Assembly: GCF_052425735.1 (NCBI RefSeq)
Contig: NC_135760.1
Span: 21,204,001-21,268,000, forward strand
Reading direction: 5' to 3'
Length of the DNA stretch: 64,000 nt
DNA from: Oculina patagonica
Taxonomy: Eukaryota
Part shown: piece by piece, positions 14,579-62,782 of the stretch
How positions within the stretch are numbered: the first letter of the stretch is position 1
How the letters are laid out: each line of letters starts with the position of its first letter
Notes under the pieces: model-generated
Seen by the model: only the letters and a program-made list of their open reading frames with translations
The model's database searches: none
What the model was told of the DNA's origin: nothing
Position numbers and translations under genes: made by a program

Positions 14579-17500
14579 CTACGTGAATGGGTTGGCCTCG
14601 TCTGGCACGCCTTCCTCCATAATGGACTCAATTAGTGACTTGCCGTTAATTATCTTCGTCGTAGCCACTAGATAGTCTGTGGGACCTGGGACAGAACAAA
14701 ATAAAGGAGTTTGAAGTTGTTTTGTGATGCAAAGATGAGTCAACATAACATTTACTACAATCAATTTTGAAAACAAGAAAAAACAGTTCACCCTCGATTT
14801 TTTAAAATATATATATATTTTAAAAGAAACTGTGCATAAAGAAAACGAACAACTTTAGAAATAGTTTAATAAAAAACTTTAGCAGCGGCATAATCAAACA
14901 GTTACCGAATGGAAAAAAGTCACTCTCCACAAATTTTAAAAAAAGGTAAAGTCTGGAACAGTGGATACGAGCCTAGTAGCCCATCAGAGCGGGGCTTATC
15001 CCGGTTTCCGTGGAATAAAGCGACCAGGACTATTTCTACTCCCCCACCCCCCCCCCCCACCCCTGGATGGGATGCAAGTCCATCATGGGGTTACCCTCAG
15101 CATTATTTTGCCAGTACCCATTCATACACCTGTGTGGAGAGAGGCACTATGAGAGTGAAGTGCCTTGCCCAAGAACATAACGTAGTGCCCCGGCCGGGGC
15201 TCGAACTCGGACCGTTAAACCGGAGTCCAGCGCGCTAACCATAAGGCCACCGTGCATCCCATATAAGAAAATTGTGCCAGAGCAGTAATTTGCTATCGAA
15301 AATACTAAGGATTTAGATGCAAACAAAGAAACCATGATTTAAATACTCACTATTTTCCTGTTGAGCAAGAAATCTTAGTGCGGATATTTCGGCGTGTGTA
15401 CAGCCACCAATGAAATAAACTAGCGTTACTTTTGGTGGACCATCCACGGAACTCTCCCCACCGGTCGACGGTCCTAAGTGGATTATTAAAAATAATAGAT
15501 GAAATGTTTGCTTCACAAGGCACTACGTTCCAGTATGACTTTCATTCTGTTACGACGCATAAATTTTTATTTTACGTTATTACAACCACAACACAGAAAC
15601 TTCACTGGACGCTTGTATGCTATCATTGTCTATTGCCAACCCGTGAATTAAATTGGCTAAGTCGGCTTTGGTTGCCACAGACATCAATTTTTCGTCAAAA
15701 CGTTCCTGACTCTTCCCTAAAAAGTAAAATTCCCCTGACCAAATAAATAGAAATTGTCGTAGAGGCCTCCAGCCTCTGCTTCCAAAAAAGACCCCGCTTA
15801 TCAGAGAGTAGATTAAAGAAGAAAACGGTTACGATTATAAACTCAATCAGTCTTACTTTTCTGAAGACCAGGAGGCAGTCGCTGGATTTCTTCAACTGCA
15901 GGACCCGGGAGCAACCGAAGAACCTGAAGAAAAATAACAAAACTTGAACTTCTATTTTGTTCACCATCATCATCATTAGTTCTGAAAATCCAGTGATTCA
16001 TTAGTGGTATTGTAAACTGTCAGCTTAGCAGTGTATTGAAGCATAACACAAAGTAAAACTATGAGTTAGAACAGTGTGTAAAATCACTGCTTCATAAACT
16101 CGCGCGACGCGTGCTAACCAATCAGGACGAAGATGCTGACTTCTTAGCCAAACAGGTACAAAACCAAAACCAATCACGAAACGACTCAAGTAACTTTCCC
16201 GCCATTTTCCACCATTACATGTTTCCCTCGCTTGCCTCAAGTCACAAATTTTCCCGCGCCTACCACCGGTTACATATTTTTCCCGCGCTTTCCACAAATT
16301 AACCCGCGCTTACTATCGGTTAATTTTTTCCCGCCCTTGTAGCCCATTACATGTTTTTGAATCGAGTCCTGACTGGCTTATGCTCTTCAACGATCCATTT
16401 GATCACGTGATTATCGGGTTGTTACCTCTTCTAGTCCTCTCCAGCCCTGGGGCCGAGCCAAAAACTGAGCCAGTCGTACAGTCAGCGGTGCGTATCCTGA
16501 AAACACGTAAGCGATGTCATTTGGATTCTGCAAAGTTAGAACAAATAATACGATAAGTGCACTTCACGTAATCCAACCTTAACTAATATAATTTTTGGTG
16601 TCGTAACTGTCAAATTCTGTTCTTGACGAATTTGTAAAAATAATTTGCCTTTAAATAAAGAAAATTTAATTTGTACATGGTTTTTATACAAATGACAGCA
16701 CATGTAAATATTTATATTCGAAGACTGGTGGCATACTTCAACGAACCACAAGGTGATTTCTTAAATTCGAAGAGAGTCTTTACATTATAAGGACGGGGAT
16801 CATATATTTCTCTTAGTCAGGAGCCAAATACGGCTCTTGTCTGATTAGACAAAGAGCAGTCTCTTTCTTTTTTCCAAATTTGCACAGAAGAAAAACGAAA
16901 TTAGAGAGCAGCTCTATTTTCTGAAGGGGAAGATACGACAACAAAAACTGTCCTAGCTATCGCGCGAATTTGAGTTCTTCTTGAGTTTAAAGCCGTTATT
17001 ATAATATTTCAGTTAATCAGTCTATGAACAGTTGGTCATACAGGAAAATTCCGGTTATAAGCCCCCCCGCTTATAAGCCCCCCCGGTTATAGGCCCATCT
17101 ACCTGGAGACAGAAAATACATCCGATTATAACCCCCCCCCCCCGGATATAAGCCCCCCTCGGCCGGATGACAGTACTGAACAGGGTTAAATGTTGCTTTA
17201 TTATGCGTTTTTAACTTCAAAACATATTTCGATCAACACTCCTGTGGCTCGTTTCGAAACGTTTTTTTATTCCGCTTATAAGCCCCCCAGAATATAAAAA
17301 ACCCCTTACGAAGTTGTATAAGCCCAGGGCTTGTAACCGGAATTTTACGGTAGCCCCTTTAAAATCTAGCTGAGTATGTCAGCACAAGCAACAAATCACC
17401 GCTCACCTGTTCCTGGACGTCTTCAACAACAAGCTTCAGTGACTTGCGCAGTACATTGTAAGATCGAGACGTCTGCGTTCTCAACAGGCCAGCGGACTCC

Positions 17501-18612
17501 AGCGGAGAAAGCGTCCTGTACGCATGCTCAAAACCATACGTCTAGAAGAACATGGAAAACTTCTTTAGTCTCTTTGTTTGGGTTGGGAAAATGGAAAAGG
17601 GAAAAGGGGAATTCTCCGAAAGAAAAAAAAATTCAAAAAAGAAGAGTCGGTTATGATAGTTTTGTATCAGCATAGTACAGGAATAGAACAATTTTTCCCA
17701 ATTTGTTTTGTTGAACAATTTGACTAAGCAAGGCATACACAATGTTACTCAGCAACATCGCTTTAGAATGAGGGTTGAGAAAGGACGTCGTTGTTTCACA
17801 AACAGAAACACTCGACACAACAAAACAATGGACGACACAAACCTGTAGAATTTCACGACAGTAGAACTCCAGCATTTTAGGTTTGAAGCCGTTATTCGTC
17901 AAACATTGAGCACACAATAAACGAAGGACCTTGTGAAAAGTGAAAGAAAATAAAGAAAATTTGCAGCAGATAAGAAGCGTACGCGACAGGTGAGAGAAGG
18001 GACGAGAAAATGGGGGGGGGGGGGGGACAAGCGCGGAGCGCGCGAAAAGGGAACGAAATGCGATCCCACGTGACGTTTCATTTTACGCTTTACTTTTTTC
18101 TTCCCCAAACCTGCTTTGAAGGGTACGAGAGTGGTCACGAACTTGGTCCATCAGTGCTAAACTTATCGAAATGTGAATGTGTAGACAGGCCTGCAGGAAC
18201 ACTTATTTAAGACCTTGTGTATTACTTAGAGACTCATACACCCCATTGTTGTGTTTCCTTTTGTTCTCTTGGAAAATATGACGTCGGCAGTCGAGTGACT
18301 TCAGTATCAACTTTAAGATGGTGCCGGAAGGTGAATTTACCGTCTTAGCCAATTTGTAAAGCTGCTTTTTCGGAACTCCAAATGACGGAGGGCTAACGTG
18401 AGCTTTTCCAATTTGCCACGGTGGCCACTCTACCTCTATCAACTTCAAGTTCAAACTAGTTTTTTTTTTCAGTTGCTGTTTTATTAAGAGTTGTGTACAG
18501 GTAAACATAACCGCCAAGTTCTCTTTGCCTACCGTTATAAGCGGTTTCTTTATTCCAAAGCATTTCTCTATGTAGGGGTTGATTTTGTCCGTGTCAAGAC
18601 CTTGCGCCAGTT
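14579..18612 (-). CDS. VPS33A: VPS33A 3' half, copy B (7 exons: 18533-18612, 17843-17929, 17407-17541, 16426-16527, 15857-15923, 15351-15473, 14579-14685); no 5' exons adjacent
   Basis: All exons have AG/GT ends and compatible phases. They encode [10 protein letters not shown]...[21 protein letters not shown]...[22 protein letters not shown]...[17 protein letters not shown]...PFT*, the Sec1/Munc18-family VPS33A C-terminus. Confidence 0.85.
14960..15262 (-). mobile_element. tRNA-derived SINE in the last VPS33A intron
   Basis: Same family as 6990-7285. The same insertion is present at the matching site of the paralogous block (28275-28560), so it predates the duplication. Confidence 0.8.
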
Positions 18613-19573
18613 CTGAGAAGAAAATAGAAAAGGAGGATAATAATAGGGATATATTCATAAACAGAATCAAATACCTTGGTATTTCTACATTTTTTGAAAA
18701 GATGTGCCAGTAAAGTTTAGAGCCACCTTATATTTTTATTTAGGGGGAATTATACCCGAAGGTCGTTTTTTCATAGCTTAACAGGAGTTTAACGTAAATG
18801 TCTCGTTCGCGTTTCAAGGAATCCAAAAACGCCCTCATTATCTCATATATCTACGTTTAACCCCTTGGCGCCGGGATTTTCTTTGAAAAAAGCACATTTT
18901 TTGGACATTTTTGACATTTTCTGGTCAGATATGAACTAAATCTGCTTCAAACTACTGGAATCAGCAATTGGAACATGAAGGCATACCTTTCTTCTACTAG
19001 CATCACATTTTATGACATTACTGTTCGGGCATGCTAAAAAAAAATGGTTTAAAATTGGTAGACGGACACCAGACAGTCCCCTGACAACCTGGAGTGCTCT
19101 TGGGTGGGGTCAACTGTCTGGCGGTGTTTCAATTTTTTTTTCTTTTTTCAATCCCTTCTTTAAACCTCTTAAAATTTAGGTATAATGCCCCCTTAACGTA
19201 ATGTGACTCTCAAGCCACTCGAACACTGGTGTACCACAAACATAGCTCTAGCCATAGTTATTAGAGGGAAATGGTTATGAGACTTATGACGCTCGGCAAA
19301 CTTGAAAGAAGCAAACAAAGATCCTAAAATTTAAGTTGGAAGGTCCACGACCGTGCACAATCTTTTGCTTTCACTCACACACTTTGGTTGAATTGCGTGA
19401 CCGTCACGTTTTTATTGGTTAGTTGCTCGGACACATCTCATAATCTATCGTGTTTTGTGCACGGCCGAGGCCAGAAAAGCAAACAAAAAAACATCAAACA
19501 GAGAATATTGCCAGGTTTCATAACCATTTAACGTTATTAACTATGTCAGTTTTAGTCATATAGGAGACTAGCT

Positions 19574-20171
19574 TGGGAGCTACGGTTTCCAAAGAGGGCG
19601 GAGGCACTGAAGACATCCACAACAGAGTAGTCAAAGCGAGAGGGGTATTCTTGAAATTGAAAAAGATCTGGAGTAGCAATAGCATCGGTCGACGAACCAA
19701 AGTCAGACTATATAAGACACTGGTAAAGCCAGTCTTGATGTATGGCTGCGAGACGTGGAAGATGAATAAAAGTGATGAGAACAAAATCGACGTCTTCCAA
19801 AGCAGATGTCTTAGACGGATATTTAAAATACGCTGGCAGGAAAGAATTACAAACAATGAAGTCCTGAAGATGGCTGAGATGGAAAACCTCAGTTGGGGCG
19901 TGCGAAAGAGAAGATGGAAATTCATCAGCCACATAATGAGGAAAGAACCAAATAACGACTGCAGAACTGCATTAACCTGGACCCCAGAAGGGCGGCGAAA
20001 ACAGGGCAGACCAAAGACAACATGGAGGAAAACAGCAGGGAGAGAAAGGGATAAAGCTGGATGGAAGAACTGGAGCGAGGTACAAATTGCAGCGGCTGAC
20101 AGAGATGGTTGGCGGAATTGTGGTGAGGCCTTATGCGCCACATGGCACGAAGAAGATAGGTAACAGGTAAC
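19574..20171 (+). mobile_element. 5'-truncated RTE-like LINE (reverse transcriptase C-terminus)
   Basis: ORF ...KPVLMYGCETW...FQSRCLRRI...WTPEGRRKQGRPKTTW with a (TAACAGG) tail. 12-bp TSD AGGAGACTAGCT at 19562-19573 and 20172-20183. Confidence 0.9.
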
Positions 20172-21460
20172 AGGAGACTAGCTCTATTCGAATCTGCCTT
20201 ACTCTGTTTCTGTAATACTACAATCTTGGACAGTTGTAATGAAAAATAAAGACCACCCTCCTCCATTTCAATGTAGGGGGAAAATGGCGCGTTTTTGGTT
20301 TTAGCGAGAATTCTTCATTAATTCGTGCAAGGGAGGGAGCATTTCTCTTTTTCCGTCGAAGACTGTAGCCTAGTGTTTTAAATTGTTTTATTGGTGATAA
20401 CAAAAAGCGGAGCAGCCAGGAAAGGAATTGGGAGGAAGGTTTGCATTACAACAGTCGATAATACAATCTTTACTGGCATCAGTGTTCACATTTTGTCTCA
20501 TTAGCATACGACTTTTGCGTAGAGAAGGTACACTGCTATATACCAATTTACTTGAAAAGTTTAAAGAGCTTGTGAAACTCAGTAATCGGGGACAGAATAT
20601 TTTAGCTCGTTACGGGTAATATTGACTTTCAAAAACTGCAACATTACTGCATGACAAAAGCGCTAATGAACCCATTCATTCTTTGTAAAACTTTAAGTTG
20701 TTAAACCTGGGGCACACAAAGCCATTTAATACATTGGGCGACAGTTATCTGATTATTTTTGTAGCTCGATCAGAGAATAAAGCACTTATGCTAATGAGAC
20801 AATTATTGTAAACAAAGATTCGTCTGTATGCATTTGAAAGGAAGCCACGAACCATAAGCAATCACAGAAGGGCGTTGGTTTGCTTTTGTCTACAAAAAGG
20901 AATATGCATTTTGAATTACGAAGTAGGATTATGCGAATTACAAGACAGAACAACCCGGCCAAGAAAGAGATCTACGTACCACACTTCAAGGCTTACAAAC
21001 AACGTAAGATGGTAATTGAATTAGGTATTGTTTGTGACACGTTCCAAACAATGATTGCGTGATGAGCTAAAAGAACGTTTGCGTGACTGTCCACTCCCAG
21101 CGATAGCACAGAGCATATTACAATTTACTTTGGCGTCAGTTGGTCGCCGCCCGCAGATCTACATACTAATTGATTGCCTTCGCCTGGAAACGGGAAATAT
21201 TCTGTTTGCTTTCCACCAGTGCGGCCGACGGAAAAACTACAATCTCAACTACACTTCGTTTCGTATTTCAGTTAATTATTAACCCGGGATGTTGTGTTCG
21301 CGTGACGTTCCCCAGTAAATGGGTTGCCGACTGAAATCAAGGCGAGTAAATGTCTTCGATAATAACCCAACCCAGTTCCGCATCATAGCAACTGCCACCG
21401 TGTTCTAGAAAATTCATGTCGCTCGTGTAGCCAAACAGTAATCTAGCAAGTGCCATCAAA

Positions 21461-23503
21461 ATGGGTACTGGTGGATCAAAAAAGCTTCAAATAGTGCAGC
21501 CACAAGCTGACGAGGCGGTGAATTCCAGTTCTCCAGAATCTCCAATGCAAAGAGCCGTTCAACCAAACGTCCTCCAAGAACAGTGGTTGAGTCACGACCG
21601 GCCGCCCAGGGAGCAAGAGAGAAATGAGACGAATTCACTTCAAGCCGATAACGTTGATTGGGATGTGTTGCACAGAGGCACGCTTGAAAGATACAAGATA
21701 AACAACCCGGAGCTAGCTAGCGATCTGCAAACAATATTTGAGAACAAGCAAGTGTTACGAAACACTTTCGCGAATAAATCAAGAGGACATGATCGGTATA
21801 CGGAGCTGCGCAAGGCTATTTATAACATGTACACTACATCCTATAGCAAGGCTACAGAAAACACCGAAATCGTGGACTTTGTGGTGGAAATCGACGTCGC
21901 AGAGGTGTTGCAAAAGTTCGCCCAGAATTGTTTCAACGATTACTACGAGATGGTCGATGAATCAGACGATGAAAGCACAGATGAGAAATCAAAATTTATC
22001 ATTGATCATTTTTGTCTCAAGTACGTGCTACTAACAATACTAAACTTTACAGACTCTTATCACGGCTTTTGCAAGGCGAGTGCTAAAGCTGGAGTAGTTC
22101 CCATGTGTCTAGAAAATATCAAACGACTCGATAAGGACCATCATGACTGGCAAAATGGAGGTGGGAAATCAGTACCACGTGATCTAATCTCGTCATGTCT
22201 CGGAATTTTGCACAACATTTCACGGCGGCTAAGAGACCGTGAGTTATTCGCTAACAGCGACGAGACTTTACTCTATTTTGCCAAAGTTGAGAACACAGAA
22301 ATTGCTACTAACGCCTTGCTTTGCCTTGGGTACCTAGTAAATGATGAAACCAATCATTTAATTTCTGCGGACGAAAACTTGCTTCGCTTTATTGTAACAA
22401 TGTTGAACGAAGCATGTCAGTCTGAAGACCGACGATCCGGCGACGGATTTTCCACGAAAGAGCTTGCAGAAGGGCTCAGCCACCTTGCCATCAACGACAA
22501 CAACAAGAAGACCCTGGGCAACGATGGAGCGGTACTTGTGCTAACGTCGATTCTGAAGACTTCAAACGATGACGAGGAAAGAGCAAGTGCTGCAAGGGCT
22601 CTGTGGATGTTGGCGTTTGACGACTCCAACAAAGATGTCATTAGGCAAGAAGCAGGGGCGTTGGATACATTACGCGAGTTACACCACAGTGGAAACCCGG
22701 AGGTGCAAAAGGCAGCTGCTGGTGCATTGTGGGAGATTGAAGGAAAGACAGCAAGAAGCAATGCCGAGAAGACTAAAGAAGCCACTGGAAATCACGTGAT
22801 GATCAGTTACCAATGGGATTCCCAGGAAATCTTAGTGGAAGTCAAGAACAAGCTTCAGGCCAATGGATATCGAGTGTGGATGGATCTGGAGCAGATGGGT
22901 GGGTCCACACTTGAAGCGATGGCCAAGGCTGTCGAAGACTCCGCTGTTGTACTGGTCTGCGTGTCACAGCGCTACAAAGAAAGCCCCAACTGTCGATCAG
23001 AAGCCGAATACGCGTATCAACTGAGAAAAGACATCATTCCTTTAATGATGCAAAGCAATTACAAGGCAGACGGCTGGTTAGGAATGCTGGTGGGGACAAA
23101 ATACTGGATTGTTTTTCAGAGTAAGCAGGTTGTTGATTCTGCTGTTGAAAAACTTATCAAGGAGTTAAATGGAAGAGGAAAAGATGGCGACACGACGGAC
23201 GGGTCACCAGAGGCAGTCATTCGACCAAGTGAGACCAGTGTTGTTGCAGCACCACGCCCAGCGACGGATGTCTCTGGCTGGACAAATCAAGATGTCAAGA
23301 AATGGCTCACAGAAATTGGATTGGCACAAGTGTGCAACGAGCACATTACGGGATTTAATGGACAAACATTGATCGATCTTCAGGAGCTCCGCAGAGAATG
23401 CCCAGATTACTTCTACAAGTATCTAGAACACACTCTAAACTTGCAAAACATGTTACATTTGTTTAAGTTCAGAAAGGAGCTAGAAAAACTTCTAGGACAT
23501 TGA
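21461..23503 (+). CDS. Intronless ARM-repeat / TIR / SAM protein, paralogue 3 (680 aa, predicted N-myristoylated)
   Basis: Uninterrupted ORF starting MGTGGSKK, with the same architecture and a nearly identical TIR domain (SPNCRSEAEYAYQLRKDIIPL). Confidence 0.93.
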   Translation: MGTGGSKKLQIVQPQADEAVNSSSPESPMQRAVQPNVLQEQWLSHDRPPREQERNETNSLQADNVDWDVLHRGTLERYKINNPELASDLQTIFENKQVLRNTFANKSRGHDRYTELRKAIYNMYTTSYSKATENTEIVDFVVEIDVAEVLQKFAQNCFNDYYEMVDESDDESTDEKSKFIIDHFCLKYVLLTILNFTDSYHGFCKASAKAGVVPMCLENIKRLDKDHHDWQNGGGKSVPRDLISSCLGILHNISRRLRDRELFANSDETLLYFAKVENTEIATNALLCLGYLVNDETNHLISADENLLRFIVTMLNEACQSEDRRSGDGFSTKELAEGLSHLAINDNNKKTLGNDGAVLVLTSILKTSNDDEERASAARALWMLAFDDSNKDVIRQEAGALDTLRELHHSGNPEVQKAAAGALWEIEGKTARSNAEKTKEATGNHVMISYQWDSQEILVEVKNKLQANGYRVWMDLEQMGGSTLEAMAKAVEDSAVVLVCVSQRYKESPNCRSEAEYAYQLRKDIIPLMMQSNYKADGWLGMLVGTKYWIVFQSKQVVDSAVEKLIKELNGRGKDGDTTDGSPEAVIRPSETSVVAAPRPATDVSGWTNQDVKKWLTEIGLAQVCNEHITGFNGQTLIDLQELRRECPDYFYKYLEHTLNLQNMLHLFKFRKELEKLLGH

Positions 23504-24103
23504 GATAACATGAAGATGCACCAGTTTTGCAAAACTGATACATGGGCAGCATTGCTTTTTATTCTTCTTATTTAGTCATCGTTATTTTAGTTACAATATT
23601 ATAATCACATACTTGTAAATAACATAATTATTTCGAGAACTTTAAAAACACTGGAAATTGTTTTGCGAATATTTCGGTAGACTTCGTGGCTCATATATCG
23701 CGAGTCGACTTGTAGCAAGTCTAATATTTCGGTTTTGTTACAAAAACCTGCCTCAGTTGTAATATCATTCTGCAACGCTGCGTGACACGTGGAGAGTAGT
23801 GTTGCGTGACAAGTGCAGAGTAGTGTTGCGTTATAACGGCGAGGAAACAAAGCATTTTCGTTTTTCATTTCCGTATTACTAGCCTTGCATTTAAATTGTT
23901 TAATTGTTGTAACTGTGATAAAATGCTAAAGATGGGAAGTGTAAGAAATTCGACTACGAACAGTCGCCATGCATTTATTCCTTAGATTTAAAGGGGCCGT
24001 GTCACGGCTGAGTTAAGTTTACGTGTTATGTGTTATTTCCGCTAGGCACAATATATTCGACTTGAACTTGATTTTTAGCTCATTCTCCAGAATGAGTAAT
24101 AGA

Positions 24104-27910: not shown

Positions 27911-28769
27911 CTACGTGAATGGGTTGGCCTCGTCCGTCACGCCTTCCTCCGTAATGGACTCAATTAGTGACTTGCCGTTGATAATCTTCGTCGTAGCCAC
28001 TAGATAGTCTGTGGGGCCTGGGACAGAACAAAATAAAGAAGTTTGAAGTTGTCTTGTGAAGCAAAGATCGGTCAACATAACATTTACTACAATCAATTTT
28101 AAGAAACAAGAAAAAACAGTACGCCCTCAATTTTTTTAAGAAACTGTACATATAGAAAAACGGACAACTTTAGAAATAATTTAATGAAAAACGTTAGTAG
28201 CGGCATAATCAAAAAGTTACCGAAAGGAAAAAAGTCACTCTCCAAAAATTATAAAAAAAGGTAAAATCTCGAATAGTGGATACGAGCCTAGTGGCCCATC
28301 AGGCCGGAGCTTATCCCGGTTTCCGTAGCATGAAGCGACCAGGAGTATTTCTACTCCCCCCTGGATGGGATGCTAGTCCATCACGGGGTAACCCTCAGCA
28401 TTATTTTGCCAGTACCCATTTATACACCTGGGTGGAGAGAGGCACTATGAGAATAAAGTGTCTTTCCCAAGAACACAACGCAGTTCCCCGGCCAGGGCCC
28501 GAATCCAGACCGCTCGATCCGGAGTCCAGCGCGCTTACCATTAGGCCACCGCGCCTCCCATATAAGAAAATTGTCGAGCAGTAATTTGCTATCGAAAAAC
28601 CTAAGGATTGAGATGCAAACAAAGAAACCATGATTTAAATACTCACTATTTTCCTGTTGAGCAAGAAATCTCAGTGCGGATATCTCGGCGTGTGTACAGC
28701 CACCGATGAAATAAACTAGCGTTACTTTAGGAGGACCATCCATGGAACTCTCCCCACCGGTCGACGGTC
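27911..28769 (-). CDS. VPS33A: VPS33A last two exons (28647-28769, 27911-28017), copy C distal part
   Basis: [40 protein letters not shown] and [34 protein letters not shown], with intact splice sites. Confidence 0.85.
28275..28560 (-). mobile_element. tRNA-derived SINE
   Basis: Same family and same intron position as 14960-15262. Confidence 0.8.
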
Positions 28770-29141: not shown

Positions 29142-29641
29142 NNNNNNNNNNNNNNNNNNNNNNNNNNNNNNNNNNNNNNNNNNNNNNNNNNNNNNNNNNN
29201 NNNNNNNNNNNNNNNNNNNNNNNNNNNNNNNNNNNNNNNNNNNNNNNNNNNNNNNNNNNNNNNNNNNNNNNNNNNNNNNNNNNNNNNNNNNNNNNNNNNN
29301 NNNNNNNNNNNNNNNNNNNNNNNNNNNNNNNNNNNNNNNNNNNNNNNNNNNNNNNNNNNNNNNNNNNNNNNNNNNNNNNNNNNNNNNNNNNNNNNNNNNN
29401 NNNNNNNNNNNNNNNNNNNNNNNNNNNNNNNNNNNNNNNNNNNNNNNNNNNNNNNNNNNNNNNNNNNNNNNNNNNNNNNNNNNNNNNNNNNNNNNNNNNN
29501 NNNNNNNNNNNNNNNNNNNNNNNNNNNNNNNNNNNNNNNNNNNNNNNNNNNNNNNNNNNNNNNNNNNNNNNNNNNNNNNNNNNNNNNNNNNNNNNNNNNN
29601 NNNNNNNNNNNNNNNNNNNNNNNNNNNNNNNNNNNNNNNNN
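29142..29641. other. Scaffold gap (500 N)
   Basis: Run of N. Confidence 1.
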
Positions 29642-31568: not shown

Positions 31569-34500
31569 ATGGTCGACTGCAAGTGCTGCAAGAATTTATT
31601 TGGATTCGCGGCCTCTCGTCCGCCCTGTGTTGTTTTCACTGTCTGTCTAGCGGCTTTCGCAATTGGTTTGTTTTCCCTCGGCTATTTCGTTCAGATGTAT
31701 GGCTGGTTTAGTACCGACGATGCCCACAATAAGGTTTGTTGCAGTTATATAATTTTGGTCTGTTAATGTAAACTTCAAGTTTGTAAACTGTTGGCTATAT
31801 ACACTATAAACAGCAACTGTACGGAAAAAACAGAACTTTCACCATCTTGGATGCAAGCTACATGTAATTAAAAGGGATAAATACACCTCTTAATCTTTCC
31901 ATATAGTGCTTTCACTTTTCAAATCATTTGATTATTAATTGTATAACGCATCCATAAAAGAAGCAATGCTCAAGGGAATTGGTAACATTATCTTTAAAGA
32001 TAGGAAAACATTACAAGAGGTAGACTAATTTTGAATCTAATAACATCAATCAATGAGAAACATGTTTTGGCTAAAATGTTTGTTTAATTCCTGATTAAAT
32101 TAAGGCTCTCGGGAGTGTGGGTGGGTTGCAAAAATTCAAAGCGAACTGCAAACTAGAGCATAAGGGAATGTAACAAGAGACCTAAGGCGATGACATGATC
32201 CATCACAGTAATGAACTCTTGATAACAAGTCAAAACAACACTTTTAATTATCAAAAAAAAAAGAAATTGAAAATTATGTGGAATTTCTGGGACTCTGCAT
32301 ATTTTGCTGACCAGCCCCACACAGACTATAGCCTACTATCGACAGCAAAAGTCTGGAAATAACCCCCACCAAAACCTTTTTGAAATTGACAGGAATGTCT
32401 TTTTTAGAGGAAGCAAAAAATTCTACTTAGTGGCAAAAACTTTTGCACACATCATTCTATGGAGCGCATGCGTGCATCAATCAAAGTATAGATGTGCTAA
32501 TACACGGATTTACTTGCTATATTACAATTTAAAATATTGTCGACAGTACCATAGCTCGTTGTGATTATATTTTGTTTTGTTGTCATTAGGAATGGCATTC
32601 TTTCTTAGACCACTTGGGTTCTTCTGAATTTTGCATCTTTGGAAACCAAAGCTTCTTGGCCAACGACACAAGCACAAACTCAACCAATATAACTGGCCCT
32701 ACACCTGTTGGGTTTACAACTGTGAATATACCAGTGCTTCATCTCTCTGTGCACCCCTCAGACGATTTTGGTGCAGTGGTTAACAATGTGACTCATGTAA
32801 CAGCAGAAATGCCAGCAACACAACTTGGTCTAAAAGGTTTGTACTAATTCTACTTAATCCCACCACACACAAGCCAATTTTTCATAGGCCGTCAAAAACA
32901 TCTTCACTTATCAGCTAGTGTGCAATGAATTAAGCCAAGTCTGTGACAAGATGAGGTCCTGTCTGGCAATATCTGGCAGTGCTAGATCTTATTTAAAATG
33001 TCTTGTTGGGTGTTGTCAGGTAACAGTGATCAGAGACAATTTGACGAGACTTGGTTGTGTCATATTACCAATAAGAAAGTGTTGTTGCAGTCAGATGAGT
33101 AAGCATCACTTTCAACATAAAGGTTGTCGAACAGGAGCATGAGGAACAATCAGCTACAATTTTGGACAAAACTGTTAAAAAACTTCGCAAATTTCCACTT
33201 ATTTAGCCAACAGAGTTAAGTTTTGCAACCCCCTTTCCCCCATTTCAATGTTGTTATTGCTGTAGTGTTTTCAAAACAAAGCCTGTTGAACCACAAACTA
33301 AAAAAACAACATTAAGTAGGGGGATAAAATAATTTTACTGGCTTGCAGGTCAGGACATTAAAATTGTAAAAAAAAAGTGTGAAATGTATTTGTTTCAACT
33401 ACTTTTGTTCAAGATTGTAGTGTGTGGCAAGCTGATAGCCAGACAAATTTTGCCCAAATATTTGACTTCAATAAAAAAATCTCCTGTTCTATGATGAAAA
33501 ATTGTGCAATGTGCAGCGGGCTTTATAAGTGGGATGCTTTAACTTAAAGGGTCACCATCTACCATTGTATTTTGCAAGCCTCTTGTGCTGTTATTGTTAT
33601 CACTCAAATGACAATAAAGAATTAAACATTTAAACATCAAATAAACTTAAAATTGATGCTAAACGTTTTCGATCTGTTTGATCATCTTCAGAGAAACTAT
33701 TTTCAATTCTTAAAAATGTGACATGAAATCTGGTGACAGTTATCTCACCAAATCCGTATTAATTTTCTGCAATACAGAAAGATGGGAGGGTATCATGGTT
33801 GTCTATGGCTTTTTAATTCTCCTAAATTGGTCACCAGTAAATTTTAGTATAAAAGAAAGTCCTGTTAAGCAAACCACTGATAAGACATAACAATTCCCAT
33901 ACTCCTCTTGAAAGTTTATTTATTCCTGAAAGTAATCAAATGTAAAAATGATCTGTAATTATGTCCTATGTAGTAGTTGATATTGAAATGAGTTTTAATT
34001 AGGAAGGCAAATTAAGGTATAATTTGATTATCATATTAATTACTTCCATTTGCCTACTTAGGTTTCCAAGAAAACTTTCTTGTCAATATCACATTGTCTT
34101 TTCTTCAACCATGGTTCATGGGTAGGTAGCATGATTTTTGCCAAATAGAAACTTGATATACCATAAAATTCTGGTTGTAAGCCCCCTGCCTGGTATAAGC
34201 CCCTCTCTGCTGGATGACAGTGCTGAACAGGGATAAATGTTGCTTTATTATGACTTTAACACTTAAAAATGTATTTCGATCAACACTGCCATGGCTCTTT
34301 TTGAAACATTTTTTTATTCCGCTTATAAGTCCACCTAGATAGAAGCTTCTCCGTTTATAAGCCCACCCAAAACCTCTTATGAAGTTGTAAAAGCCCAGGG
34401 CTTATAACCCGAATTTTACGGTATTGTATTCCCACCAACTCTTGTACTTTGCACATAATCTTCTGCATAAAGTTGATTAAATTTATAAATGAGTTTATTA

Positions 34501-37293: not shown

Positions 37294-37324
<31 letters not shown>

Positions 37325-37508
37325 GAGTCAGTCAGTCAGTGTTGAGAAGTGAACTTATGTTCATAAATTATAGGTAGTTCATAAGTTATAGGTTAAGTGC
37401 ATACATTGTGTACACTGTACAATGTATACACTATAGACTCAAAAGCCTACTTATGTTAATATTTTTTTGTTTTGTTTTTTATTGTTACAGACAAACCTTC
37501 CTCTGTGA
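31569..37508 (+). CDS. TMEM248: Transmembrane protein 248 homologue (exons 31569-31733, 32590-32836, 34062-34121, 34700-34787, 35290-35461, 36145-36270, 37491-37508)
   Basis: Phase-compatible exons. N-terminal SRPPCVVF...LGYF and EWHSFL, and C-terminal VNLRLQYSSYFLFVMVITCVLYGMIKGRP, match remembered TMEM248 motifs. The last tiny exon is less certain. Confidence 0.85.
34905..35195 (+). mobile_element. tRNA-derived SINE in a TMEM248 intron
   Basis: Same family as 6990-7285, flanked by a repeated CCTCCCAAACACAG (probable TSD). Confidence 0.75.
36302..36760. mobile_element. TA-flanked MITE (CCGTATTTATTCGA...GGGCGCTTATTCGAGG family)
   Basis: TACCGTATTTATTCGATTAAGCGCCC / GGGCGCTTAATCAAATAAATACGGTA. 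A related copy lies at about 50042-50548. Confidence 0.8.
37281..37340. repeat. (CAGT)n microsatellite
   Basis: Direct reading. Confidence 0.9.

Positions 37509-49203: not shown

Positions 49204-49204
<1 letters not shown>

Positions 49205-49241
<37 letters not shown>
49205..49241. repeat. (AAC)n microsatellite
   Basis: Direct reading. Confidence 0.9.
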
Positions 49242-49242
<1 letters not shown>

Positions 49243-51838: not shown

Positions 51839-51963
51839 ATAAAAATGGAAATTCTTGTGTTTAGAAGTCTTCGAATCAGCCTGTCTTCGATTCTGCAACG
51901 TCTGCAAAGTAGAAGGCGCAAATTCGCAAACGTTCAGCGGTATTACATTTAGAAGAAAACAAC

Positions 51964-54900
51964 ATGGCGGCTGCGGGAGGGAGTCACTTGTCTAGTGGCC
52001 GAGTTAACGTAGGATTGCTGCGGGAATGTGCGAGAAGAGAGCTTCTTCAGTGCTTAAATAAACAACCTGGATCTAAGGTAATGCGAAGTAAATTAATCTT
52101 TACGTTTCTTGTAAGCTACAGTGCTTTAGATTTCAAAATGTGTGATCAATCTAAAAATTAAAGTCCCTTTGCATATTCGTTGAATGTTCCATAGTCTGTT
52201 TTCTTGCAAGGAGAAATCAAAACTTGCAAATTTTAACCTCCACTAAAGGTCGTTGTTATCGCTTTTTTGAAATGCCATACAATCCTAGCTCCGGATCCAT
52301 TATGTTTCAATACTTTAGAGATGAAAAAATTATGCTGGAATCATTCGACCAGCCAGTTAGGACATGCACCCCCCAACTGGGGGCTGTTGGTAAAACCCGT
52401 GACGGTCAAATTTGGAAAAACATGTGACGGCTATGTCCGTGATGGATCCGTGACATATCCGTGACGGATAGATTCTTACATACCGTAAAATTCCGGTTAT
52501 AAGCCCTGGGCTTATACAACTTCGTAAGCGGTTTTGGGTGGGCTTATAAGCGGAGGGGCTTATATTCGGGAGGGCTTATAAGCGGAATAAAAAAACCTTT
52601 TGGAACGAGCCACGGGAGTGTTGATCGAAATACGTTTCTACGTAAAAAACGCATAATAAAGCAACATTTAGCCCTGTTCAATACTGTCATCCGGCAAAGG
52701 GGGGGGCTTATATCCGGGAGGGCTTATAACGGGATGTATTTTTTGTTTCCAGATAGATGGGTCTATAACCGGGGGGGCTTATAAGCGGGAAATGCAGGGG
52801 GGTACATGTCCTAATTAACAAGACAAAGGACAATGTGGGTTTGTGCATCCACATTTCTGGGGACCATTTGTCCCTTGGGACCCCGTAACTACACTTCTTT
52901 TGTGGGAGAGCGGAAGGCTTTTTGTCAGTTGATTTTATCTTGGGTATACTAACAGAGCTGAATCGTCAATTCTTGGCTCTACGCAACTACGGAGAAACTG
53001 TCTCCAAAGATGATCTGGGATGCTGGTCAAAGCATCAAATTTAATAATAATTTTCTTTTTTCTTTTGGTTATTTTTTAACAGGCCATAGTCTGGGATGAC
53101 AAGCTGACTGGACCATTTGGTTTGATTGCTGAGTACAAGTTACTCAAGGTATGAACACGTTAAAGGCAGGGGTATTTTGCAGAATGCAGAATGCAGAACC
53201 CAGAATGATGGAATGGTTGATTGATGGAATGGTTAATTGATGGAATGGTCGATTGATGGAATGGCAATAGTACAATACCCTTGGGACCCTAACCAACAAA
53301 TAAAAGCTAACCGCAAGCAAAACCAGAGTGAGAGCCAACCGCAAGCAAACAGGAGTGAAAACTAACTGTGAGCAAACCGCTGACCATTATTCTGCATTCT
53401 GCATTCTGCAAAAATACCCCTGCTGCCAGTAGGTTAGTCTGAGTCCTGATTAGTATGTATTATTATGATTTTAATTTAATTATCATTTTATAAGTTGTGT
53501 TTGTTTTATTTGCCAGGAACATGAGGTTGAAGTCATGTTTCCTCTCCGTCCTGGCCGGCTGCCTCCATCTCAAGTCCATAATGTTATTTTCATAACAAGA
53601 CCTAAACCCTCATTGATGGACATAATTGCTGACAATGTTCTCAGGTAATACAACTTTAAACTCATAACAAAAGAGGAAGTCTGTAATGTGTTGTTGTCTT
53701 CAGTGGCTTTAATGTTTGTGCAGAGTGACTACAGTCGAAGCTCTCTTATTGACAGACACTCTCGTAAGCGGACAGCTCTACTTACGGCCGCCTTGTCTGA
53801 AACTCTGTATTTTTACATTCTTGTAAGCGGACAGATAGATAGATAGATAGTTTATTGATATTCTTACATGACAGTCTAAAAACTGAATTGCGTAAAAATT
53901 TACAAAGAGATAAATTATTAGAAATACAACTATTAAAATCTATTATAACTATATTAAAAATACAACTATTAAAATCTATTATAACTATATTAAAAATTTG
54001 CCATAGAAGGAAAAAAGCTATGTTTAAAACGATTGGTTCGAGCCTTACATGCTTGACATTCCCGTAAGCGCCCGCGGACACTTTCAGAGATTACGACTTA
54101 GACTTTTTCTTTGTTTTTAAGCTCCCGTAAGCGGACAGCCCAAAGAAAATCCTATTAACTACCCTTGTATCTTGTTTTTGTGAATAAACTTCACATTACC
54201 ATTCGTCACAGTGATTTAACAGTAATTTAAGTATCATATTTTAGTGCTTGTTTTGTCGTCATCCACGTCTGCCCGGTTATTGTTAGTTGGGCAAGTTCCC
54301 GTAAGCCGCCATCTTTCCCCTACACTTCTAGTGGCCGCTTACAAGAACCATTCTCGTAAGCGGCCAGCCCCGAGGGTGTCCGCTTACTAGAGCTTTGACT
54401 GTTACGGTTTTGTTTAATGTTGGCTTTGCACATGTATTACTTGCACAGTCTGGTCTGAGCCAGGGATTGGAACCTCTGGGCTAATCTGAATGCCTGCCAA
54501 AAAGATGGCTGAATCTGATTGGGTGTTGAAAACTTGTTCATTCACCACTGACAATATCTGCCACACATTCACAATCAAACCAGAACCAGAATAGGCCTGG
54601 GTTCTCGTTACCAACTTAGCCTCGCCTCGCACTTGTGGGTTAGCCCAGAGCCACTGAGTTTCCTGACCACTGGTCGGAGGAACAAGGCTCTGGGAATGAA
54701 ATTGTTACTTGCAATGAAAAGTTCTTATTTTGTTTTCCAAATGAGCAAAGCTGCGTTAATGTTCCTAGCAAATGACAAAACATTGTTCCACAAATGTTGT
54801 TTCCTTAATGTTTCCCCAACAGTGTTTGGTGGAAGCAAAACAACAAATGATTTTGAGTTTTTTCAGGAACATTGTGCTTTGGCAGCAAACATTTTTCCAT

Positions 54901-57900
54901 TTATGCACCAGGGGCACAGTTTTGGGAAACTACAATTCTTTCTCCTTTTCAGAGGCTTGAGAATACAAAACATACTGCAGACATTTTTTAAGTGATATTG
55001 TTACATACAGCCTTGTCACTGTTGTCAGTAGTAGTGTCTAGAAAAATTCCTGGAAGCAGTTCATAGAAGAATTACTGTAGCTTTCTTTTTTGTTTTGCTC
55101 TAATTTCTTAGTGAGGAAGGCAGAGAAAGCAAGAAAAAAGAGTTCACTATCTTGTTTGTTCCAAGAAAAACTATGTTATGTGAAAGAAAACTTGCTGTAA
55201 GTAAGAAAATAATAATTATTATAGATTATTTTTATTTAATTAACAGGTAAATGTAGTTTGTGGCTGCCTGCTATGGTGATTACATGAATTGATGTAACTG
55301 TTGTTATAATAAATATATGTAGACACCAGATAATAATCTATAGTGTATATATTTTGTTAAGTACTATTCACTTTGACGTTGAACTTCTACCATTACATAC
55401 CTGCCAACCCCCAGAGTACAAAAATCTGGAGACATCTAGAAATCTTTGCATTTTAAGGATATCATTTAAGACAATGCATGAATACTGTGAGAAAATCAGA
55501 CAGATATTAAAAAACTTGGAGATCCCGGGAAAATCCGGAGAGTTGGCAGGTATGCCATTATCAGTTTTTTAGACTCCTGTTAACCAGGACAAAGAATAAA
55601 CACACTGCAGTAGTGTACCGAAGAATCTTTGTTTCTATTTACTCCTCCTGAAAATTTGGTGATCAAAGTAGCTGCCTGTTGGTGCTTAGTGAAGGGGCCT
55701 ACTTCCTTCATTTTATTTAAACCAATTTTTTGAACATGTTAGGTACAACAGTCATTAGCAACAAGCAGTCTAATATTCAAGATGAGTGCTTTAATGCTAC
55801 TTTTAATTCATTATTATGTTTGCAGGAGCGCAATGTGTCATTTGTTAACATTGATGAATACCCCTTGGAACTGATACCCCTGGATAGCGATGTTTTGTCA
55901 CTTGAAATGGACACTAGCTTCAAGGTATATAAAATAAAAAACAAGTATCCATATAAAGTGATCTTCTCTATAATAATAATAATCTTTTATTAGGAAGCCT
56001 TCATTCACTATACAGTGGTTTTCAGAAAGGTCCTAACTAAGATTAAAAATACTTAATAAGACTATATACAATAAAACGAAAAATACCTAAGAATTAAAAA
56101 CTATTATTAAAAACTAACTTGAATACAAAAGAAAGAATTAACTAAAAAACCTACTTAGAACGCTACGCTTAAAGTTTCTTTCTGATTTGCATTAGTTACA
56201 AGTGGATTTTTGGGGAGCAGGGATGGCGCAGTGGTGAGAGCGCTCGCCTCCCACCAATGTGGCCCGGGTTCGATTCCGGCCCGGTGTCATATGTGGGTTG
56301 AGTTTGTTGTTGGTTCTCGCCTTGCTCCGAGGGTTTTTCTCCGGGTTCTCCGGTTTTCCTCCCTCCTAAAAAACCAACACTTCCAAATTCCAATTCGACC
56401 TGGACAGAGGACCCGCATGAAAACCAGCGAGCGCTGATGTGGCTTCCTCTCTAAATATAGTAATTTATTTTCCATGATTTTAAATACATCTCCAGAGGGG
56501 CTCAGGGATGAGGGAGGGTAGTGGTATATGGGGTATAAATACCTTTAATAAGGTTACTATTTTTAGTGACTACTAATTTTAGCGATTTTTTCTAAGCAAG
56601 ATTTAGCGACTATTAAATTTAGCGATTTTCCGAAAATTAAAACAACAACAACAATTTTAATATAGAGCTGAGATGGAAATAAATGTTCGGTAATAGAACA
56701 GAGTCACTTAAAATTGAACGAACATTATCATTGTCAGAAAGAACAATTAAAAGTGAATTGCAAATGTTAGAAAGTGAGACCTCGTCAGGGTAATCAGTCA
56801 TATTCTCCACGATGCCGGCGACCCCAGCTCTTTCCCAATCCTTCTTAATTGTTGCCCTACCTTTTGATGTTGTCATATAGTTGAACAGGGCCACTATATG
56901 TAATTTTGTATTCCTCTGGCGGGCGGGGGTATTAATTTAACGTGTATTAAATCTGACTGAGACAAATTTTAGCGAGTACTAAATTTGGCAATTTTGGCCC
57001 AACTCGCTAAAATCGCTAAAATTAGTAGCCACTAACAATAGTTACCTTAAGGTATAAGGGGTAAAATGATTTTTTGGAAACTTGACCCAGATAAGTATAA
57101 TTAAAAAAGAAGACCAATCTGGGTGTGGGTCAAGTCTCATGTGTCTCCTAATAGACAAATGAGAGAGAGCTTTCATCTTTGAAAGATTTCTTGTAATATG
57201 TATTAATATTGAGCTAAACCACCAAAACAATTTGTATCCCTCCTTGAAGAGTATAAACATAAGCCCTGACCACCCTTGTCAATACCAAAATCTATAGTTG
57301 ATGACCCTAAAAGAGATGTGAACCACGGTGGGCACAAAGTGACCCAAAAACGCTCACCTTCATTCATCTTTTTCGTTTTTGATACTGGTTACCTGAAATT
57401 TTGCATAAATATAGAACTCGTCATTCTGAAAAATCGCATGTTTTTTGTTTTATCGAATTTCGAATTTTTTGGCGGGAAAATGACGAAAATCGAAAAACTG
57501 ATGAAATTCGAAAAACAAAAAACATACGATTTTTCAGAATGACGAATTCTATATTTGTGCAAAATTTCAAGTAGCCAGTATCAAAAACGAAAAAGATGAA
57601 TAAAGGTGAGCGTTTTTGGGTCACTTTGTGTCCACCGTGAACATTCCCACCCCTTTGACATAATAAATTGACAACATTTTGGCACGACAGCCCTTACTGG
57701 TTTTCACGTGGTTCCTCTATCCAGGTCAAATTAGAATTTGGAAATAATGTTTTTTTTTCACAGTTATTTGGAAAGCACTCTTTCAGACAGTCTAACTTTC
57801 AGTTCTGTTTGCCCATTTTTGTTTTGTTTTGTAGGAGTGCTATTTGGAGAATGACTACACATCCTTGTTCTATGTTGCCAACTCCTTGATGACTCTTCAA

Positions 57901-59026
57901 ACATTATATGGCACAATTCCAAAGATTTATACTAAAGGAACCATGTCCAAGGTGTGAATGAAATATATAAGTAGTCTGTTTCATTTTTAGAGTAAAACAT
58001 TTGTATGAATACGGCTAGAATATGATACAAAAACTAGACTTTTACTTTTTTAACAATTGTGAAAATATGCCATAGGGTTATTTTTGTTCATTTACCGTCT
58101 CTTGGGGGGGGGGGGGGGGCTTATATTTTTGGAGAGTGCTCATTTTAGGAGGGTTTATTTTCAGAAGGAATTTTGCTTTTGGAAAATGATTGGATCTTGA
58201 ATAACATTTACCGGTATTTATAATATGAGAATTTTGAAGTGAACTCATGATCTGAAGCACAAAACCAGGAACCAACTTTACAATGAGGAGGTGGTGGGGA
58301 GGGGAAGGGAACTAGATGAAATTACTAATTAATCACCTACAGGGCTAAATCAAAACACAAGCCAACAACTCACAATTTGTAAGGTGATTTGGTTCTCAGT
58401 GGATACTGGGCTATGTTTTTCTTACCTCACTCCAGTTGGCAATGTTATACAATGAATCTCAAATAGCATCTTAAATCTCAAGAATAGAGTCAAGAATCAA
58501 GTCTTAAAAGAAACTGACAACTTACATTTGCCCAGTACTCGAATCATGTAGTATTAACTTTCATCATTTATTTGAAATTTTGCCAGTTAAGATAACATGA
58601 AGGCTTCAAACCCTGAAGGAAAATTCAAAAAACATAGTCTGACTTGTATCACAATTTGTCTTTTATTCTATTTTTTAATGGTTAATGAAATAAATGAGAT
58701 ACCGTAAGTACTTAGGAAATAAGGAAATAATTTCGCACATTACATTTTCTCTCGTTTGACATGAGACAAAACCTGTGGGGAAACTCACTAATTTCACTCA
58801 CCACCTTTTTTACTCACACTTTTGGTTAAAATCACACTTTTTTCTCCTCAGCGTGTCTTGGACATGATGATGCGCAAGAAGCGAGAAGCAGCTGATTCAG
58901 AAAATCAAGTCTCACCACAGATTGACACTCTTCTGTTGATAGACCGTAATGTAGACTTGCTGACTCCATTATTCACCCAGCTCACTTATGAAGGGCTGAT
59001 AGATGAACTCTATGGAATACACCACA
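51964..59026 (+). CDS. VPS33A: VPS33A (HOPS/CORVET SM protein), 5' part, 7 exons (51964-52077, 53083-53148, 53517-53644, 55112-55196, 55826-55924, 57835-57951, 58852-59026); runs toward the gap
   Basis: [21 protein letters not shown]...[43 protein letters not shown] and [30 protein letters not shown], with canonical splice sites and matching phases. Confidence 0.93.
53165..53423. mobile_element. MITE with GCAGAAT-repeat TIRs
   Basis: GCAGGGGTATTTTGCAGAATGCAGAATGCAGAA mirrored by TTCTGCATTCTGCATTCTGCAAAAATACCCCTGC. Confidence 0.75.
55396..55554. mobile_element. 159-bp MITE with 6-bp TSD
   Basis: CATACCTGCCAAC / GTTGGCAGGTATG flanked by CCATTA on both sides. Confidence 0.75.
56212..56455 (+). 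mobile_element. Second tRNA-derived SINE family
   Basis: A and B boxes (TGGCGCAGTGG...GGTTCGATTCC) followed by a non-tRNA body. Confidence 0.75.
56540..57055. mobile_element. MITE with TTTTAGCGA subterminal repeats
   Basis: TAAGGTTACTATTTTTAGTGACTACTAATTTTAGCGA mirrored by TCGCTAAAATTAGTAGCCACTAACAATAGTTACCTTA. Confidence 0.7.
57324..57639. mobile_element. 316-bp foldback MITE with CACGGTG/CACCGTG ends and 3-bp TSD (CMC/Chapaev-like)
   Basis: Almost fully palindromic, with AAC duplicated at 57321-57323 and 57640-57642. Confidence 0.8.
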
Positions 59027-59539: not shown

Positions 59540-59580
<41 letters not shown>

Positions 59581-60151: not shown

Positions 60152-60651
60152 NNNNNNNNNNNNNNNNNNNNNNNNNNNNNNNNNNNNNNNNNNNNNNNNN
60201 NNNNNNNNNNNNNNNNNNNNNNNNNNNNNNNNNNNNNNNNNNNNNNNNNNNNNNNNNNNNNNNNNNNNNNNNNNNNNNNNNNNNNNNNNNNNNNNNNNNN
60301 NNNNNNNNNNNNNNNNNNNNNNNNNNNNNNNNNNNNNNNNNNNNNNNNNNNNNNNNNNNNNNNNNNNNNNNNNNNNNNNNNNNNNNNNNNNNNNNNNNNN
60401 NNNNNNNNNNNNNNNNNNNNNNNNNNNNNNNNNNNNNNNNNNNNNNNNNNNNNNNNNNNNNNNNNNNNNNNNNNNNNNNNNNNNNNNNNNNNNNNNNNNN
60501 NNNNNNNNNNNNNNNNNNNNNNNNNNNNNNNNNNNNNNNNNNNNNNNNNNNNNNNNNNNNNNNNNNNNNNNNNNNNNNNNNNNNNNNNNNNNNNNNNNNN
60601 NNNNNNNNNNNNNNNNNNNNNNNNNNNNNNNNNNNNNNNNNNNNNNNNNNN
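60152..60651. other. Scaffold gap (500 N)
   Basis: Run of N. Confidence 1.
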
Positions 60652-60819
60652 TAAAGCAGAGGTGTTGTAATTTCAATTTTCCCCGACTTTTCTTCGAAAT
60701 GTCAATTTTCCCTGTCTCACTTGCAGAATGTTGTAAGGGTATTCAACTGCCTAATTTCCATATCAGAGAGTAAACTAGAAACAGAAAACGGTCACGATTA
60801 TGAAATCATGCAGTTTTAC

Positions 60820-62782
60820 TTTTTTGAAGACCAGGAGGCAGTCGCTGGATTTCTTCGACTGCAGGTCCCGGGAGCAGCCGAAGAACCTGAAGAAAAACAG
60901 CAAAACTTTAATATAAAAATATTAATTTTCCTCAGTGACTTCTAATGTTAGTCTGAAAATTCGCTGATACATTCATGGTACTGTAAACTGCATGTCAGCT
61001 TGGCAATCCACTGAAACATAATACAAAGTTTCGATAATAAAACTATAGAGTGTTTTCATGGCAGCCATGTTGGAGAAGTCAAACAAAAGAAGATATTTGC
61101 TGAAAAAAGATTTTTTAAGATTCATTCGATTCCGTAATCATTGGGTTGTTACCTCTTCCAGTCCTCTCCAGCCCTGCGGCCGAGCCAAAAACTGAGCCAG
61201 TCGTACAGTCAGCGGTGCGTATCCTGAAAACACGTAAGCGATGTCATTCGGATTCTGCAAGAACAAATAATACAATAATAATAAATGTAAACTCCACGTG
61301 ATCCTGCAACTTTTAATAGCTATTAAATATAACTTTCAGGATGGTTTAAAATTTCAGCACTTGTTTTTTTTTTTTTTTTTACAGATGTAAGTGTACACAT
61401 GTAATTGTTTCACAGGTGTTACAAGTATATAGCCGTTTACCAGACTGGTCACATACTTCATTGCACCACAGGGTGATTTATTAAATTTAGAAAGGCGAGG
61501 ATCATATTTTTCTTTGTCAGGAGCCCACCAGGCTCCTGTCTGATAAGACTTAAAGAGCATGCTCTTTCTTTTCTTCCCAAATTTGAACAGAAGGAACAAA
61601 AAATTAGAGAGCAGCTCTATGTTCTGAAGAAGAAGATACGACAACAAAAACTGTCTTAACCATCGGGTGGTCACCAACAAACGTGTTCATCCACGCCCTT
61701 TCCCCTTCTTCCCCCTTTAAATCTAGCCGAGTAAGCCAGCTAAAGAAACAAATCACCGCTCACCTGTTCCTGAACGTCTTCAACGACAAGCTTTAGTGAC
61801 TTGCGCAGTACATTGTAAGATCGAGACGTCTGCGTTCTCAACAAGCCAGCGGACTCCAGCGGAGAAAGCGTCCTGTACGCATGCTCAAAACCATACGTCT
61901 ATAAGAACATAAAAATTGGAAAAGGAAAAACGGGAATTATCAGAAAGATAGTTTTGTATCAGCATAGTACATGTATAGAACAGTTTTTTGAACAATATGA
62001 CTAAGCAAGGCATACATAATGTCACTAAGCAACATCGCTTAAGAATGAGGGTCGAAAACGTTTGTTGTTTCACAAACTAAAACATTCAACACAACAAGAC
62101 AACGGACAACACCAACCTGTAGAATTTCACGACAGTAGAACTCCAGCATCTTGGGCTTGAAGCCGTTATTCGTCAAACACTGAGCACACAGCAGACGAAG
62201 AACCTTATGAAAAGTAAAAGAAAATTAAGAAAATTAACGGCAGTTAAGTAGCGTACACGACAGTTGCGAGATGGGAGGAGAGGGTCGGGGGAAAACAAGC
62301 GCGGAACACGCTTTTCCTGTCCCTTTCACGTACCTGCTTTTTAGGGTAGGAGAGTCAGTGGTCACGAACTTCGTCAATTAGTGCTAAACGTAACTAGATG
62401 TGAATATGTAGACAGGACTGCAGAAAAATTTATTTGAAGCCTTGTGTATTGCTTAGCGAATCATACACCCCGTTTTTCGGAAAATATAACGTATGACTAC
62501 AATTTTACTGCGTCGGCAGTCGAGTGACTTCGGTATCAACTTCAAGGTGGTGAAGGTAAATTCCACCTTAGCCAGTTTGTGAAGCTTCCAAAACTGAGAG
62601 GAAATCCTAATGACTGAGGGCTAATTGCCACTATGGCCACCCTAAGGTGGCTACTGTTTTATTAGGTGTTATGTACAGGTAATGCATGTTCTCTTTGCCT
62701 ACCGTTATAAGCGGTTTCTTTATTCCAAAACATTTCTCTATGTAAGGGTTGATTTTGTCCGTGTCCAGACCTTGCGCCAGTT
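60820..62782 (-). CDS. VPS33A: VPS33A 3' exons, copy C proximal part (62703-62782, 62117-62203, 61764-61898, 61153-61254, 60820-60886)
   Basis: Same five peptides as the first five exons of copy B, with intact splice sites. Confidence 0.85.

Follow-up and report, generated by a model that had tools for sequence, protein, structure and literature searches.

Two copies of a seven-exon 3' cassette in a VPS33A-like gene of Oculina patagonica are both under purifying selection and may serve as alternative gene ends

Tandemly duplicated exons that substitute for one another, as mutually exclusive exons do, form the closest system described in the consulted sections of three reviews (PMC9741552, PMC8373072 and PMC9013439). 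Our subject is a VPS33A-like housekeeping gene of the coral Oculina patagonica, of which three copies of the 3' part, here called A, B and C, lie in a 64,000-nucleotide stretch of DNA (assembly GCF_052425735.1, contig NC_135760.1, positions 21,204,001 to 21,268,000; hereafter the window). As in the system treated in those sections, the Oculina copies are homologous exons arranged in tandem and alike in length and phase, the two complete ones (B and C) are both under purifying selection, and the annotated isoforms differ solely by the copy used. Unlike that system, the Oculina unit is not one internal exon but seven exons with the terminal exon, its 3' untranslated region (UTR) and a nested gene, and the two products are 98.7% identical with no obvious functional tuning. 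As far as the consulted sections go, the locus looks like a variant of the kind covered in PMC9741552 and PMC9013439, in which alternative isoforms derived from tandem duplication would arise at the scale of a seven-exon terminal cassette carried by a nested gene.

Two further comparisons place the locus. Unprocessed pseudogenes from partial duplication resemble it in their origin by segmental duplication and in having no 5' exons of their own, and copy A as well as a truncated 5' duplicate described below (5'b) behave in this way; unlike them, B has no disabling change and a ratio of replacement to synonymous substitution rates (omega, dN/dS) of about 0 instead of about 1. In the coral Orbicella faveolata (locus L002), VPS33A has 17 exons, and one immune-type gene with ARM and TIR domains is nested antisense in the intron between exons 10 and 11. 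The Oculina host gene likewise has 17 exons with an antisense ARM-TIR gene before exon 11. Orbicella and Desmophyllum carry a single cassette each, and Orbicella a single nested gene within L002, whereas in Oculina there are three cassettes and no fewer than five ARM-TIR copies.

The cassette exons, numbered e1 to e7 and corresponding to VPS33A exons 11 to 17, were mapped by eye and by alignment as follows.

14579-18612, minus strand: copy B, exons 11-17, a complete 3' cassette (e1 18612-18533, e2 17929-17843, e3 17541-17407, e4 16527-16426, e5 15923-15857, e6 15473-15351, e7 14685-14579, with a TAG stop)
60820-62782, minus strand: head of copy C, exons 11-15, at the start of contig 3 (e1 62782-62703, e2 62203-62117, e3 61898-61764, e4 61254-61153, e5 60886-60820)
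27911-28769, minus strand: tail of copy C, exons 16-17, near the end of contig 1 (e6 28769-28647, e7 28017-27911)
7327-9059, minus strand: copy A, a truncated relic with e1-e3 only (e1 9059-8980, e2 7942-7856, e3 7461-7327)

The exon coordinates given by an earlier examination of the letters alone (the sequence-only reading) were exact, on the minus strand; reading the VPS33A copies on the plus strand yields no gene. All cassette exons have AG/GT borders and matching phases, and the seven B-C exon pairs are equal in length throughout. B carries no disabling change in its 699 nucleotides or at its 13 splice borders. Copy A has lost e4 to e7, and repeat elements follow its last exon.

The cassettes belong to VPS33A. 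Their sequence matches residues 435-484 of VPS33A in PDB 4BX9, both B and C align to positions 379-600 of a profile made from 81 VPS33A proteins, and the C-terminal region of the family (Sec1/Munc18, Pfam PF00995) is present and collinear with the orthologues. A profile search retrieved coral VPS33A proteins, whose cluster includes a number of O. patagonica models from a single 29.98-Mb record; a single-exon search of a representative protein library returned fragments only, and exact look-ups of the proteins P0007, P0182 and P0273 gave no hit. The translation of B is identical to the last 232 residues of RefSeq isoform X2 (P0182, XP_078360973.1), and that of C equals the C-terminus of isoform X1 (P0271, XP_078360972.1). 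RefSeq models X1 and X2 as isoforms of one VPS33A-like gene spanning both tails, an annotated gene of 70 kb that runs from exon 1, past the right edge of the window, to e7 of B.

By comparing B with C, we found 34 differences in 232 codons, 31 synonymous and 3 replacements, which gives a dS of 0.206, a dN of 0.0057 and an omega of 0.028 by the Nei-Gojobori method. Over e1 to e5, 21 codons differ by 22 nucleotides, every one of them synonymous, so the sequence-only count of about 21 codons, all synonymous, holds; over e6 and e7 the replacements V/M, M/T and P/T were exactly those it had listed, to which we add 9 synonymous changes. All three replacements lie on the tail of C (M, T, T), and B has V, M and P like Desmophyllum. 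If one copy had evolved neutrally, the probability of at most 3 replacements among 34 changes would be 5e-10 to 2e-8.

Branch-specific tests were made with a self-written GY94-type codon model (F3x4, kappa estimated), using the orthologous exons of Orbicella faveolata and Desmophyllum pertusum (L003) as outgroups. Pairwise dS to these two genera is 0.37-0.50 with an omega of about 0.04; the B-C dS is about half of that, with equal constraint. On the B branch omega is about 0, with no replacement change, and omega = 1 is rejected (2dlnL = 18.3, p = 1.9e-5, 232 codons); on the C branch omega is 0.05 and omega = 1 is rejected with p = 5e-8. Neutrality of B is also rejected for e1-e5 alone (p = 4e-5) and for its terminal branch with A in the tree (100 codons, p = 4e-5). 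In the 100-codon tree A, B and C form a near-trichotomy, and the A branch has an omega of 0.6-0.75, which does not differ from 1 (p = 0.46) but exceeds the background (p = 7e-4). The 100 codons of A hold 7 replacements; P>S, K>T and Q>P had been noticed before, a list that was incomplete and to which P>L, A>I and S>Y belong as well. Copy A thus evolves neutrally and is an internal control of the same age, whereas B and C are both under purifying selection at the protein level. The dN/dS comparison proposed by the sequence-only reading therefore bears out its two central claims, that both 3' copies were under purifying selection and that B is no ordinary dead fragment: an omega near 1 or disabling changes, as expected of a pseudogene, are found in A and not in B. 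In addition, a short contig (L001) has an Orbicella-type variant (RLQ) in e3; it was not used.

The non-coding parts of B and C are divided. Introns 1-4 and the head part of intron 5 are 59-83% identical, in line with the earlier remark that the introns are clearly diverged, but this does not extend to the tail part of intron 5 and intron 6, which are 90-95% identical. The step in identity falls within intron 5, at a contig break, and means either that the tails were homogenised later or that the head and tail of C come from different cassettes. The 3' UTRs are about 93% identical over 250 nucleotides. C has polyadenylation (poly(A)) signals about 260 nucleotides past its stop; in B, a 0.6-kb insertion in the 3' flank (13712-14335), which includes a repeat also found at 9454-9697 and, inverted, at 54188-54371, parts such signals from the conserved 3' UTR. 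Upstream of B, an insertion of about 1 kb (19280-20281) that is absent from C contains a long open reading frame (19521-20177, minus strand); its plus-strand annotation is a DUF6451 product, and the insertion is probably transposon-derived.

The upstream half of the gene was followed in a comparison locus (L004; GCA_052425735.1, CM126637.1) that matches the window base for base, the locus coordinate being 94960 minus the window coordinate. The true exons 1-10 lie there, outside the window, followed by two further ARM-TIR genes and then e1 of C. The window has no complete set of exons 1-17 on one strand, only the three copies of the 11-17 type on the minus strand and a paralogue of exons 1-7 on the plus strand; exons 8-10 are absent from it, and there are no exons 1-10 in gap-free contig 1 between e1 of B and e7 of C. 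If B is translated, it must therefore borrow the single upstream part, and the constraint on B indicates that it is translated, or was until very recently.

We consider it about an even call that the duplicated seven-exon 3' cassette is used alternatively. Some transcripts from one promoter would skip C, join exon 10 to e1 of B and end at the 3' end of B, giving X2, while the other path would take C and give X1. Damage in either cassette would then produce faulty HOPS/CORVET subunits, which may be why both are constrained although their products differ at three poorly conserved residues only. Whereas the exon structure, the selection, the ancestral state and the presence of two annotated isoforms are observed, we infer the use of B in RNA, the exons taken by X2 and this reason for retention from the sequences and their annotation. 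The idea is already implicit in the RefSeq X1/X2 pair, and among the options offered by the sequence-only reading, an alternative 3' cassette spliced to a shared 5' half is the one that fits best, although the partner it saw in the window was misidentified.

Several points weigh against alternative use. X1 and X2 are annotation models, and a search for Oculina transcript contigs showing use of B found none. The proteins of e1-e5 are identical, so X2 may equally consist of e1-e5 of C and e6-e7 of B, though the constraint on e1-e5 of B argues that these exons are in use. Taken alone, e6-e7 give no significant result (p = 0.09 for B and p = 0.06 for C), and the codon-model code was our own and was run on only four or five taxa. 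The use of B needs read-through of the 3' end of C and an intron of 45-52 kb, and no AATAAA or ATTAAA occurs within about 960 nucleotides of the stop of B because of the insertion in its 3' flank. Two near-identical products offer no obvious reason for keeping both. Finally, the assembly around C is unreliable, with two gaps and the intron-identity step exactly at the contig break. We also looked for docking and selector RNA pairing of intron 10 with the stretch preceding each e1; this gave energies inside or close to those of shuffled sequences, and duplex folding of such long sequences is not meaningful here.

The nested genes suggest how the cassettes multiplied. By self-alignment, the window contains a tandem array in which each unit consists of a VPS33A-like segment and an ARM-TIR(-SAM) gene (domains by Pfam), among them the following two.

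10671-12725, plus strand: ARM-TIR(-SAM) gene upstream of e1 of A, part of the repeat unit
21461-23503, plus strand: single-exon ARM-TIR(-SAM) gene upstream of e1 of B, duplicated with the cassette (self-alignment and L004 gene call)

The ARM-TIR genes of the units are 82-92% identical to one another. They are mosaic: the copy beside the head of C (L004:28702-30932) is 92% identical to that of A (10668-12781) and 87% to that of B (21334-23556). This pattern, set against the near-trichotomy of the exons, suggests unequal crossing-over or conversion within the array. The single nested gene and single cassette of Orbicella indicate that the unit was amplified in Oculina. Tandem duplication of the unit of ARM-TIR gene and exons 11-17 took place at least twice and at about the same time, leaving cassettes C, B and A downstream of one set of exons 1-10. 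A lost its last four exons and decays neutrally, and B kept all seven exons, the splice sites, the stop and the ancestral residues. Near A, an 815-residue gene call with Arm and TIR domains (4579-9200, minus strand; L004:85760-90381) starts at about 9200, upstream of e1, and extends into an inverted ARM-TIR open reading frame at 1767-3695; a separate 101-residue call covers the exons of A.

The same history allows a further account of the constraint, which we hold tentatively and at less than even weight. The amplification of the ARM-TIR genes may have dragged along the last seven exons of the host, an essential trafficking gene, which may then have come to use the two cassettes interchangeably, both being strongly constrained simply since either can reach the protein, without any functional difference between the products.

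The assembly is made up of three contigs in this region.

1-29141: contig 1, gap-free, holding A, B and the tail of C
29142-29641: assembly gap 1, 500 N, within intron 5 of C
29642-60151: contig 2, 30.5 kb, between the two halves of C, with a TMEM219-like gene, a PRDM9-like gene (minus strand) and 5'b (plus strand)
60152-60651: assembly gap 2, 500 N, within intron 5 of C
from 60652: contig 3, beginning with the head of C
51964-59026, plus strand: 5'b, VPS33A exons 1-7 with all borders intact, in contig 2 between both gaps
31569-37508, plus strand: TMEM219-like gene of contig 2, called in L004 with PF14940

Both gaps leave the exons and reading frames untouched. The end of contig 1 aligns to intron 5 of B up to B position 15789 and the start of contig 3 from B position 15820, so both halves of C end at a single point of the homologous intron, separated by 58 and 131 unmatched bases and by all of contig 2. 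Contig 2 is either a real insertion of about 30 kb or a scaffolding misplacement, and flipping it in place gives no sensible gene order. The missing length of intron 5 of C was sought through the Desmophyllum and Orbicella introns, which have no detectable similarity, and we found no paper on the O. patagonica nuclear assembly.

Such an assembly leaves some room for a second complete VPS33A gene that ends in B and whose other parts are hidden by collapsed repeats, by both gaps and by a contig 2 placed or oriented wrongly, but we judge this unlikely. A second copy of exons 1-7 does exist beside both gaps, its exon 7 ends in phase 1 and is frame-compatible with e1 or e6, and the leap in B-C intron identity from 59-83% to 90-95% at the contig break would allow different origins for the head and tail of C. 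This copy, 5'b, is annotated by RefSeq as a separate gene product (XP_078361546.1, 268 residues) and differs from the full-length protein by N/S, L/I and S/T over the 261 complete codons of exons 1-7. Its homology to the true 5' region is mosaic, with 76-98% identity, and ends 46 nucleotides past exon 7, and exons 8-10 have no counterpart in contig 2. Compared with the true copy, 5'b has 10 synonymous differences and 3 replacements (dS 0.06). The replacements all belong to the 5'b branch, whereas 7 of the 10 synonymous differences polarise to the true copy and 3 are unpolarisable, leaving at most 3, and by estimate about 0, for the 5'b branch. The omega of 5'b does not differ from 1 and exceeds the background (p = 9e-4). 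The low dS, against 0.21 for B and C, and the relaxed omega mark 5'b as a more recent partial duplicate under relaxed constraint, which is no partner for either B or C. Contig 1 runs gap-free from A via B to the tail of C without exons 1-10 upstream of B, and no second complete 5' half for B, which would have spoken for a separate gene, is found in it.

The claim that only one VPS33A 5' end lies in the window therefore stands as far as number goes, but this half is a paralogous fragment on the opposite strand, with exons 1-7 only and three residue differences, and it is not the shared partner proposed for the 3' copies. The unequal branch lengths of 5'b and the true copy (51964-59026 and L004:10001-22088) may reflect gene conversion or a duplicate that sits at the ancestral site beside PRDM9. 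The PRDM9-like gene is duplicated too: the copy in contig 2 (40368-51838, minus strand) is collinear with the copy upstream of true exon 1 (L004:1-2929) at 76-92% identity, and Orbicella has a single PRDM-type gene in the matching place, upstream of exon 1. The block of PRDM9-like gene and exons 1-7 was duplicated in an event separate from that of the cassettes.

Because dN/dS reports past constraint and not present use, B could also have been functional for long, perhaps as the main cassette, and have become a relic silenced so recently that it is still undamaged; the 0.6-kb insertion, which leaves about 1 kb between the stop and the closest poly(A) signals, would suit this. We rate it as rather improbable: all 699 nucleotides and 13 splice borders of B are intact, its branch has 0 replacements compared with 7 in 100 codons for A, and a RefSeq isoform model ends in B.

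A stand-alone C-terminal VPS33A fragment, made from a promoter of B's own that is possibly divergent with the ARM-TIR gene about 2.8 kb upstream, has little to recommend it. Although e1 of B and that gene stand head to head and conserved non-coding blocks occur upstream of e1 in both B and C, the first codon of e1 is incomplete, so that an exon ending in phase 1 has to precede it, the sequence before e1 showed neither a conserved coding exon nor a start codon in either cassette, and a GenBank model of 188 residues simply takes an internal Met as its start.

That the assembler left haplotypes uncollapsed, an option of the sequence-only reading, or made some other false duplicate, as a Hi-C-style scaffold with two 500-N gaps and prone to local errors might invite, is rejected as scarcely credible, since the copies are not near-identical sequences flanking a gap (exons 95% and head introns 59-83% identical, with indels of hundreds of bases, and a dS of 0.21, about half the distance to other genera), A, B and the tail of C lie in one gap-free contig, a third copy has decayed differently, and every unit has its own diverged ARM-TIR gene; old balanced haplotypes are not needed and are rejected too.

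For annotation, these results call for caution, since the assembly is doubtful around C and what looks like the 5' half of VPS33A in the window is a paralogous fragment. For the biology of the gene, the locus is a natural experiment: of three copies of the same age in one array, one evolves neutrally and two are held at the level of constraint seen among orthologues while encoding nearly one protein. If B is truly spliced in, a host gene can be reshaped when the gene nested in it expands, and expression alone would be keeping a redundant multi-exon cassette for about half of the coral-family divergence.

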